NCBI GenBank assembly: GCA_907165135.1
Contig: OU015567.1
Location: 13,454,001-13,518,000 of the forward strand
Direction of reading: 5' to 3'
DNA from: Oikopleura dioica
Lineage: Eukaryota; Animalia; Chordata
Length of the DNA stretch: 64,000 nucleotides
Each line of letters opens with the position of its first letter. The stretch's first letter is position 1. A model generated the notes under the pieces. The model saw nothing but the letters and a program-made list of their open reading frames with translations. It was not told the origin of the DNA and ran no database searches. The position numbers and the translations under genes were made by a program. Below are positions 40,973-43,741 of this stretch, piece after piece.

Positions 40973-43741
40973 TTAGGCAAATCCAGCTTCCTTGTAGACA
41001 TTGTAGACCTTGGATACAGATGTGATGTAGGCGGCAGTTCGGATATCCAGACCAAGGTCGAACTCTTCAGCGGTGTCCATGATTCGCAGACCTGAGCGCT
41101 TCATGGTGTAGGCAAGGCCGGAGTGGACAATGTCTTTCTCGCTCGCTCCGTGGATTTTTTGCTGAAAGTATATTTTAAGGGCTCAGCATTGACTTGAATT
41201 GAGTCGCTATTTCAAATTATTTTTGATAGTCTTTTCTTACGTTGAGTTCAGCGTTTGGAACAACGGACAAGTTCGAGAACTGGCTGTGGTGTCGGTAAAG
41301 CGATTCTTGCACGGATTCTTAAATTGATGTTAACAAATTTCTACCTTCGTTTAGTTCTTACGGAGAATAGCCAAGTTCTGATCCTCAGTAAACTGCCAGG
41401 TGAGTCGGCCGTAGGAGACGTGGTTCAAGTTCTTGAGCCATTCGAAGTAGGAGACGGTGACACCACCAGCGTTCAAATACAAGTCGGGAATAACCAAAAC
41501 TTTCTTGTCGAGAAGGATCTTTTGGGCCTTAGGTGTCACTGGGCCGTTGGCGCCTTCGCAGATGATTTTCGCCTGGATTCGGCTGGCGTTGTCGGCAGTG
41601 ATGACCTTAAGAAGGAAAAATTGAGGCTTGGAATAAAAAAAAATACCTTTTCTTTGGCGCAGGCGCCGAGAATGTCGCATTTCTGTTCAATAAGAGGTCC
41701 GTCTTTCGCTTCGTCCCATGCTTTAGCGCCTGGGAAGCCGACAATAGTTCCGTTTCGCAACTTGTAGTCTTCGAGAGCATAAATGTCAATTCCGTCAGGA
41801 TTGTAGAGAGATCCGTCGTATTCGACGATACCGATGCAGTTCGCGCCCTGAAGAAAAAATTAGCAACAGTTCTTCAACTGAAAAACATGTTACTTACAGC
41901 CCGGACGAAGTATCTGCTGCTGTGGAAACCGACGTTTCCGAAACCTTGCATAATAAAGGATTTTCCCTGCATTCCCGGTGCCAGGCCGACCATGTCCATG
42001 TATTTTTTTGTGTTGCAGAAGATGTGCGTTCCGTGGTAAACACCTCGTCCAGTGGCAGAAACTCGACCGTGAACACCTCCTTGAGAAATGGGCTTTCCAG
42101 TGACGCAGCCAGGCGCATTCAGATCAGTTGGGTTGAGTCGGGAGTACTCGTTCGCCATCCACGCCATTTCGCGCTCGCCTGTGTACATGTCTGGCGCGGG
42201 AACATCGATGGAAGGCCCGAGGAAGCCGTGCTACAAGTTTTCGTGAAACATGCTTTTGGAAAGAAAAAAGTTTCACCTTGGTGAGCTGCTGAGTGAAGCC
42301 TCGAGTGACGCGCTCCAACTCCTGAGTGGAGTACTTTTTCGAATCGATGGTGATTCCAGCCTTGGCGCCGCCAAATGGAACATCGGCGACGGAACACTTC
42401 CAGGTCATCAGGGCAGCGAGGGCTTTTACTTCGTCCATGTCGACATCGGGGGCGTATCGCATGCCTCCCTTTGTCGGAAGACGATGATGCGAATGCTGAG
42501 CTCGGTAGCCGGAAATAACCTGGAAGAAGTAAGTATAATGTTTTCATCATAAAAATCACCTGGGAGGATCCATCATCCATTCGGACTCTGAAGTTGGTTT
42601 CCAAAACAGAAGCGCAGGGCATCATATAGTCGAAAATACCCTGAATCTCCTTCATTCGTTGATCTTCCGATCGCTGGAGTGCTTCCATCTGCTCTCGCTT
42701 GATATCTTCAGATCTGCCAACTAAAAGATTCAAGTGTTACAGCTTCGGTTAATGATTTCCGCTTCATACTTTCGACCTTGGTACAGAGTTCGAAATTTCC
42801 CGCGCCGCAAGCTCCCGCGAGCCCCCGCGGGAGCGGGGAGCAAAATTTCTCCCGCGCCCCCGCTCCCCAAGACATTTGGATATTCTTTCCCCTCCCCCGC
42901 TCCCTCGAGATTTTCTCGTGATCTTTCCCCCTCCCCCGCTCCCGCCGTAAATTGCTCTTTCCCGCCTTCTTCCCGCCCCTTCCCGCGCCGCGAAAACTCA
43001 AAAATGCTCCCGCGGGGCTGCGGGAGCAGCGGGGAAGAAGGTTTTTTTAATTCAAGAGGCTTGACGGCCCTTCGGGCCGTATCAGCCCCGTTCCTTGGTT
43101 TTTAAATTCAAGAGGCTTGACGGCCCTTCGGGCCGTTTCAGCCCCGTTCCTTGGTTTTTAAATTCAAGAGGCTTGACAAAGGCCGGGGAAGTCTTAGTTG
43201 ATCAAAACAAAGTAATATTGTTCTTGCTTTTAGCTTTGTTATGGTTTTTATATATTTTTTTCAATTTTTTTCTCAATTGTCGAATTATCAAAGAGGCCTG
43301 ACCCAGGCTTCTTCCTTAGTAAAGACCTTTTAAACCAGCCCTCACGTTGATTTTCTTTCCCGCGGGCTCCCGCGGAGCAAAAGAGAGGGGAATCCTTCCC
43401 GCGCCCCCGCTCCCGCGCAAAATTTTTAGACCTCCTCCCCGCCCCCGCTCCCGCGCAAAATTTTTGGACTTGCTCCCGCTCCCCCGCTCCCGCAAAAATT
43501 TTCGACCTTGCTCCCGCTCCCCGCCCCCGCGAAAAGTTTCAGTCATAGTTCCCGCTCCCCCGCACCCGCAAAAGGTCGCGGGAATTTCGAACTCTGCCTT
43601 GGTATCTTCAAGAAGTTTCTTCTCGAGGATCGCTGCAGATGCTTCTGTAAATTCCAAAACCATGGCGTAGAATTTTGGGTTGTCCTTGACCCCAGCAGCT
43701 GCAGCCGAAGCTCGCTTTGATAAACTCAGAACTCGACGCAT
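40973..43741 (-). CDS. GLUD1: Mitochondrial glutamate dehydrogenase
   Basis: Transit peptide, [86 protein letters not shown]. Confidence 0.95.
42784..43596. mobile_element. hAT-type MITE, 813 bp, forming the first GDH intron
   Basis: TIR CAGAGTTCGAAATT(T)CCCGCG; 8-bp TSD CCTTGGTA (42776-83, 43597-604); GC-rich CCCGCTCCC subterminal arrays. Confidence 0.95.
43041..43177. repeat. 56-bp tandem repeat (~2.4 copies) inside the GDH MITE
   Basis: TTCAAGAGGCTTGAC recurs at 43051, 43107 and 43163. Each full unit has the hairpin ACGGCCC-TTC-GGGCCGT. Confidence 0.9.

Follow-up and report, generated by a model that had tools for sequence, protein, structure and literature searches.

Intron birth in animals is largely unobserved, and intron turnover in the chordate Oikopleura dioica is among the highest known. 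Here we describe a stretch of 64,000 nucleotides (nt) of the O. dioica genome (NCBI GenBank assembly GCA_907165135.1, contig OU015567.1, positions 13,454,001 to 13,518,000 of the forward strand; the whole of it is called the window below) in which exon 1 of a glutamate dehydrogenase (GDH) gene is interrupted by a hAT-like miniature inverted-repeat transposable element (MITE). The insertion segregates in a conserved housekeeping enzyme and carries an exact GC-AG route built from its target-site duplication (TSD), which makes it a case in which the birth of a chordate intron by transposition can be directly tested; sequences of both the empty and the filled allele are available.

Transposons that leave a messenger RNA (mRNA) by splicing have long been described. 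The maize elements Ds and dSpm and the Caenorhabditis elegans element Tc1 are spliced from exons through cryptic sites in or near their termini, which softens the mutation. These events are usually imprecise and leaky, whereas the GDH element has an exact route owing to an AAG/G in its target (here and below a slash marks a splice boundary). Introners, according to Huff, Zilberman and Roy in 2016, are reportedly DNA transposons that generate introns. Their use of TSD sequence as splice sites has been described (Gozashti et al. 2022, 10.1101/2022.06.06.494994). Like the GDH element, introners are non-autonomous, are bounded by terminal inverted repeats (TIRs) and TSDs, lie in coding sequence and show presence/absence variation between isolates, and in both the TSD gives one or both splice sites and the mRNA is unchanged if the element is spliced. 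Introners differ in forming families of many near-identical intron copies, whereas the GDH case is one copy examined; the GDH element, for its part, has no specialised splice signals, its GC being half TSD and half TIR and its AG pure TSD.

The closest described system is that of another appendicularian tunicate, Fritillaria borealis. According to PMC11282704 (citing Henriet 2019), most introns of that species stem from insertions of MITEs that have TIRs and TSDs; the introns lie at species-specific positions, a splice site is made from the adjoining exon sequence, and the insertions are neutralised by a U2 spliceosome whose choice of sites is relaxed. The Fritillaria introns have mainly AG-AC or AG-AT ends and their splicing was shown by transcriptomes, whereas the GDH candidate is GC-AG and is known from DNA sequence. 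The GDH element is a long (813 bp) hAT-like MITE, and its GC-AG ends would be typical of the G*-AG tolerance of O. dioica. Approximately 11-12% of O. dioica introns are non-GT-AG, typified by GA-AG; they are spliced accurately and are enriched among new or lineage-specific introns (PMC4122922, PMC8008620). The published proposal for the spread of introns in this species, made in 2010, is reverse splicing (PMC4122922).

The features of the locus are as follows.

43598..43741, minus strand: coding part of GDH exon 1, 144 nt, 48 codons (M...LLEDTK), with the ATG at 43741 and the end, GAT ACC AAG, at 43598.
43597..43604, minus strand: upstream TSD copy, TACCAAGG, in which AAG/G plus the first C of the element form the candidate GC donor.
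42784..43596, minus strand: non-autonomous hAT-like element (MITE) of 813 bp in GDH exon 1, CAGAG...CTCTG in the sense direction.
43580..43596: TIR on the exon-1 side, sense CAGAGTTCGAAATTCCC, 17 nt, 94% complementary to the other arm.
42784..42800: TIR on the downstream side, element end GGGAAATTTCGAACTCTG, 17 nt; the similarity of other copies stops exactly at 42784.
42776..42783, minus strand: downstream TSD copy, again TACCAAGG; the AAG/ within it is the candidate acceptor, and the 7-nt piece begins with its final G.
42777..43597, minus strand: candidate GC..AG intron, 821 nt, equal to the element plus one TSD; its removal gives the empty-site sequence exactly.
42770..42776, minus strand: 7-nt GTCGAAA, the ancestral end of exon 1, which would be a micro-exon if the element were spliced as proposed.
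42721..42769, minus strand: GT..AG intron of 49 nt, phase 1, in the Ile codon A/TT (GAA A/GT...AG/TT GGC); the sequence after the intron is TTGGCAGATC.

Open reading frames of the empty site were found by protein search of metagenome assemblies with the 48 residues of exon 1. Four of them (P0152, P0277, P0279 and P0280) read ...LLEDTKVES... and then enter the 49-nt intron, which corresponds to exon 1 without the element. At the DNA level, same-lineage contigs from five ENA assemblies (one Tara Oceans run) all carry the exact empty site (L004, L018, L019, L020 and L021). Each gives two alignments with the window (83-96% identity), of which one ends at 43597 and the other starts at 42783, and on each contig the pieces overlap by exactly 8 nt, the overlap being a single TACCAAGG. 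Across the site, L004 is identical at every base to the window with the 821 nt taken out, save for one single-nucleotide polymorphism towards the end of the 49-nt intron. The site is also uninterrupted in L016 (..EDTKIE..), in L005-L013 (..DDTQIE..), in L014 from the Bergen lineage OdB3 (..DDSQIK..) and in L002 (..KQNELK..).

Since the exon is uninterrupted here in every lineage compared, the five contigs of the same lineage included, the insertion is derived and, on this comparison, recent, as the initial annotation had proposed from the window sequence; the orthologues give no ancestral intron at the position of the element. The reverse possibility, that the empty sites are products of excision, was considered and rejected: all five are exact and without footprint, and the outgroups are empty as well.

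The filled site is found in the assembly and in one DNA sequencing run (X25), and is missing from all five of the wild same-lineage contigs. Run X25 has many single-nucleotide differences from the window, and in it a 200-nt contig covers 43547-43744 without mismatch, bridging exon 1 and the element (50 nt of element and 148 nt of exon) at a depth of 36 against 42-67 for the flanks; no empty-site joint was reported in this run. The depth of the bridging contig, close to that of the flanks, together with the lack of a reported empty joint, is a hint that carriers need not have an intact copy. A search of the protein collection with exon 1 plus the read-through into the element (141 amino acids) gave no other filled-site contig, only the distant orthologue P0001. 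We regard the insertion and its polymorphism as established, with very little room for doubt.

Both ends of the element directly abut the perfect 8-bp duplication. The TIRs start with CAGAGTTCGAAATT, which fits the YARNG-type start of the hAT consensus, and the TIR of hobo likewise begins CAGAG. The arms hold GC-rich subterminal repeats of approximately 38 nt with the motif CCCCCGCTCCCGC, the centre is AT-rich and carries a 56-nt tandem hairpin module, and the open reading frames of the element are low-complexity read-throughs only, with no transposase frame among them. In two DNA runs the k-mer depth of the termini is 10-50 times that of single-copy sequence. Several contigs of the DNA run X28 match the element from 42784 inward and diverge outward into at least four other flanks, confirming the element boundary at 42784. 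On its 8-bp TSD, CAGAG TIR, multi-copy state and lack of coding capacity, this element is a hAT-like MITE, which agrees with its initial classification; it shares with hAT MITEs in general the TSD length, the short CAGAG repeat, the short subterminal repeats, the non-coding interior and the copy number. It differs from them in that its TSD lies off the hAT target consensus nTnnnnAn, which TACCAAGG / CCTTGGTA fits on neither strand; the consensus is a weak preference, and we give this little weight. A TIR search of the 64-kb window and 23 other loci returned no second copy, a scan of the element against Rfam gave nothing meaningful, and an autonomous hAT partner or transposase was not identified, no search having been aimed at one.

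The tandem module at the centre of the element is itself of unusual abundance. The 56-nt unit, with the hairpin ACGGCCCTTCGGGCCGT (43043-43177), reaches k-mer depths of 137,000-474,000 in two DNA runs against a single-copy depth of 50-75, indicating thousands of copies of the unit per genome. It also occurs in metatranscriptome contigs, at depths of 58-120.

The insertion falls within the final 15 nt of exon 1, and the normal donor of the exon lies 7 nt downstream of the element. The duplication allows nine equivalent cut positions, and only the pair 43597/42777 gives a segment of the form G[N]..AG. The initial annotation had read this 821-nt segment as the element plus one TSD, beginning with GC, ending with AG and restoring the empty site, with the TSD offering a proto-splice site AG/G; its coordinates and counts are all correct when read on the minus strand, the duplication gives AAG/G on both sides, and L004 supplies the predicted empty sequence apart from the one intron polymorphism. 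Since the target contains AAG/G, the element and one duplication make up an exact GC..AG unit. Joining exon 1, the 7 nt and exon 2 gives an open frame (...LLEDTKVEIGRSEDIK...). Exact removal alone restores LLEDTKVEIGRSE, which is collinear without gaps with all appendicularian GDH complementary DNAs (cDNAs) recovered, for example P0181 (LLEDTEVELGRHE).

Other lineages have ATCGAAA, ATCAAAA and CTCAAGA as homologues of the 7-nt piece; an origin of the piece from the element was considered and rejected on account of this homology to coding sequence. An 11-nt string, CAAGGTCGAAA, is found both in the interior of the element (43500-43510) and across the right duplication and the 7-nt piece (42770-42780). 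As the copy at the target is ancestral coding sequence, the match is either chance or microhomology bearing on target choice.

The 7 nt adjoin a genuine intron, which bears out a further point of the initial annotation. The 49-nt intron lies at the same position in L004, L016, L005 and the OdB3 contig L014, and for OdB3 a metatranscriptome cDNA contig (L015) matches L014 with the intron removed (ATC AAA A/GTAAGA...CATAAG/TT GGC). Its identical position in OdB3, confirmed there by cDNA, indicates that this intron is old. L002, from the most distant lineage, alone is without it. In L002 (L002:385-649) a 46-nt GT..AG intron lies 22 codons downstream, after QKQK, at a place where the window has none.

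Exact GC-AG splicing of the 821-nt unit is, in our judgement, the best single explanation of the filled allele, and we put its chances at about even. According to this proposal an 813-bp hAT-like MITE would have transposed recently into exon 1, within its last 15 nt, duplicating TACCAAGG. The target happened to hold AAG/G, so that the left copy with the first C of the element would read AAG/GC and the right copy would end ...CCAAG/G. The allele would then be tolerated most likely because the permissive U2 spliceosome of O. dioica removes the 821-nt unit, probably helped by the TIR stem that joins its two ends. In a predicted fold of the 821-nt RNA (dG -338 kcal/mol, z = -3.8), nt 1-21 pair with the 3' end and only UACCAAG is left free, which would bring donor and acceptor together. 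We infer that the adjacent 49-nt intron is probably removed first, by intron definition, after which the acceptor would face a 168-nt exon. In that case the 7-nt piece would never need to be recognised as a free-standing exon, making the micro-exon mechanistically plausible. The product would be the wild-type mRNA, ...DTK/VE I/GRS..., with the junction GATACCAAG/GTCGAAA/TTGGCAGATC. At the candidate donor, AAG/GCAGAG, the exon-side AAG and the A at +3 match the GC-donor consensus AAG/GCAAGT and positions +4 to +6 (GAG) do not. Donors are weakly conserved and AAG acceptors are normal in this GDH gene and its homologues.

The wider reading, that O. dioica is gaining introns now by insertion of hAT MITEs and that the GDH allele is a segregating new-born GC-AG intron with TSD-derived splice sites and a 7-nt micro-exon, we put forward tentatively, with a probability somewhat short of even. 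Splicing of the element would show that one step is enough to create a 7-nt micro-exon; without splicing, the locus is an ordinary polymorphic disruptive insertion. If the wider reading is true, the intron turnover of O. dioica and its excess of G*-AG introns would be explained by DNA transposition rather than by reverse splicing.

Several points weigh against exact splicing. The donor is weak, with positions +4 to +6 unlike those of GCAAGT, and lies within the TIR stem; a T-rich tract is missing from the acceptor, TCTGTACCAAG/; and the candidate intron is 16-20 times longer than the other introns of the gene, which measure 40-50 nt. The AG/GT at the right duplication (AAG/GTCGAA) could act as a recursive site, which would delete the 7 nt and shift the frame. 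Use of the GC donor with the strong TTTTAG acceptor of the 49-nt intron is out of frame and, by hand translation, meets a stop soon after. In addition, 83 in-frame, stop-free G[N]..AG routes lead to the two acceptors, some of them with better consensus, since the frame of exon 1, continued into the element, meets a stop only after 93 codons; the existence of an in-frame solution is therefore not remarkable in itself. The initial annotation had foreseen that other in-frame routes exist.

The RNA data searched gave no junction across the element. An RNA run of the same species label, X6, is of another lineage and gave 11 partial reads, none at or above 99% identity. In the metatranscriptome X1 no contig covers exons 1-2, though a 205-nt GDH contig is present. 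An exact-pattern scan of the metagenome contigs for the joined sequence CTTGAAGATACCAAGGTCGAAA matched only L001, a bacterial gene and a chance match. Representative and profile searches of the protein collection gave no cDNA and no annotated or full-length protein of the same lineage; they returned only the OdB3 GDH, P0184, and other appendicularian cDNAs.

The most serious alternative, though we consider it unlikely, is that the filled allele is null or hypomorphic, the element being retained (with a stop after 93 element codons) or the 7 nt being skipped with a frameshift. Such an allele could persist by being young, recessive or heterozygous, by having drifted up in a laboratory line, or by being buffered by a second GDH. 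Its absence from the five wild same-lineage contigs, and its presence only in the assembly and in X25, would fit a disruptive insertion, as would the weakness of the proposed splice sites, the sequestration of the donor in a stem and the early stop that follows when the GC donor is joined to the TTTTAG acceptor. Set against this are the depth of the X25 junction contig, which is similar to that of the flanks with no empty-site joint reported, and the documented permissiveness of the O. dioica spliceosome (PMC4122922).

Whether buffering is available turns on P0184, the annotated GDH of OdB3 and a second GDH labelled O. dioica. This protein is 78% identical to the window GDH, with a different N-terminus, and comparison of its flanks with the window gave no synteny. 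Scrambling among O. dioica lineages is known (PMC11067885). On these comparisons P0184 would be either a paralogue or the Bergen orthologue of the window GDH; if a paralogue, it may buffer a null allele, which counts against exact splicing as the reason why the insertion is tolerated. On this account the essential role given to the gene in the initial annotation is only presumptive.

A rather improbable alternative is that the element is spliced by one of the other in-frame routes, so that part of it is exonised, the 7 nt are skipped and GDH gains an N-terminal insertion. Candidate donors for such a route to the TTTTAG/ acceptor at 42721 are AAG/GTCGAA at 43506 (adding 28 amino acids), GGA/GCAAGT at 43473 (39 amino acids) and GAG/GTCTAA at 43431 (53 amino acids). 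These three have a canonical GT or the consensus GCAAGT and would use an acceptor of proven strength, and the open frame of 93 codons and the 83 routes noted above are in favour of this reading. Against it, the protein would differ in a stretch over which all appendicularian GDH cDNAs are collinear, and GTCGAA and GTCTAA are poor donors at +3. An assembly artefact, in which a repeat was misplaced in the exon, is hardly credible: a multi-copy element whose centre is an extremely high-copy module can mislead assemblers, but the perfect 8-bp duplication repeats precisely the sequence of which the empty alleles have one copy, and the X25 contig crosses from exon 1 into the element without a mismatch.

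The remainder of the gene is intact.

40973..42720, minus strand: other GDH exons, all open, separated by introns of 40-50 nt, with the stop codon at 40973-40975 and the domains PF02812 and PF00208.

The two domains are found with E = 2e-34 (PF02812) and E = 3e-22 (PF00208), and the product is 54-84% identical to GDH proteins and collinear with animal GDH. By these similarities the minus-strand gene is a glutamate dehydrogenase of the ELFV family, mitochondrial type. The 48 amino acids of exon 1 are 100% identical to the first 48 of P0152 and collinear with the appendicularian GDH cDNAs. Between the window and L005 the exon translations are approximately 95% identical (a hand count, with few residue differences) and the DNA approximately 77%; this difference, together with the intact downstream exons, indicates that the gene is under strong protein constraint. 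In the metatranscriptome X1 the 205-nt contig matches without mismatch and has the 46-nt intron at 42231-42276 spliced out, and so represents GDH mRNA of the same lineage.

Within GDH alone, the presence or absence of introns varies among O. dioica lineages. The 40-nt intron at 42520-42559 (DDGSSQ / VISGYR) is missing in the lineage of L005 and L007, in which the exons are fused (L005:520-891). A single open reading frame of 279 amino acids runs across exons 2-4 in L016 (L016:720-1559), which on its sequence seems to be without both the 40-nt (42520-42559) and the 46-nt (42231-42276) introns.

Upstream of GDH, the DNA of the window and that of L002 are approximately 68% identical, but two blocks are near-invariant, CGATTCTGGGACAGACNCGTGGGCGTGGC (approximately 43895-43925) and CGAAACGCCCCTGAGCNCAAACTC (approximately 44107-44130). 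On this conservation we consider CGATTCTGGGACAGACNCGTGGGCGTGGC and CGAAACGCCCCTGAGCNCAAACTC candidate promoter elements. A TTTTTAG is present at 43751-43757, 9 nt (ACTTGAAA A) upstream of the ATG, and reads TTTCAG in L002; it is likely to be the acceptor for trans-splicing of the spliced leader to GDH. The O. dioica spliced leader has, for its 3' part, two exact matches in the window, which mark the DNA as that of O. dioica; introns of approximately 47 nt, the occurrence of related contigs in marine metagenomes and the closest named protein, an O. dioica GDH, agree with this. The two matches lie at 54576-54594 on the plus strand and at 55382-55400 on the minus strand, in opposite orientation to each other.

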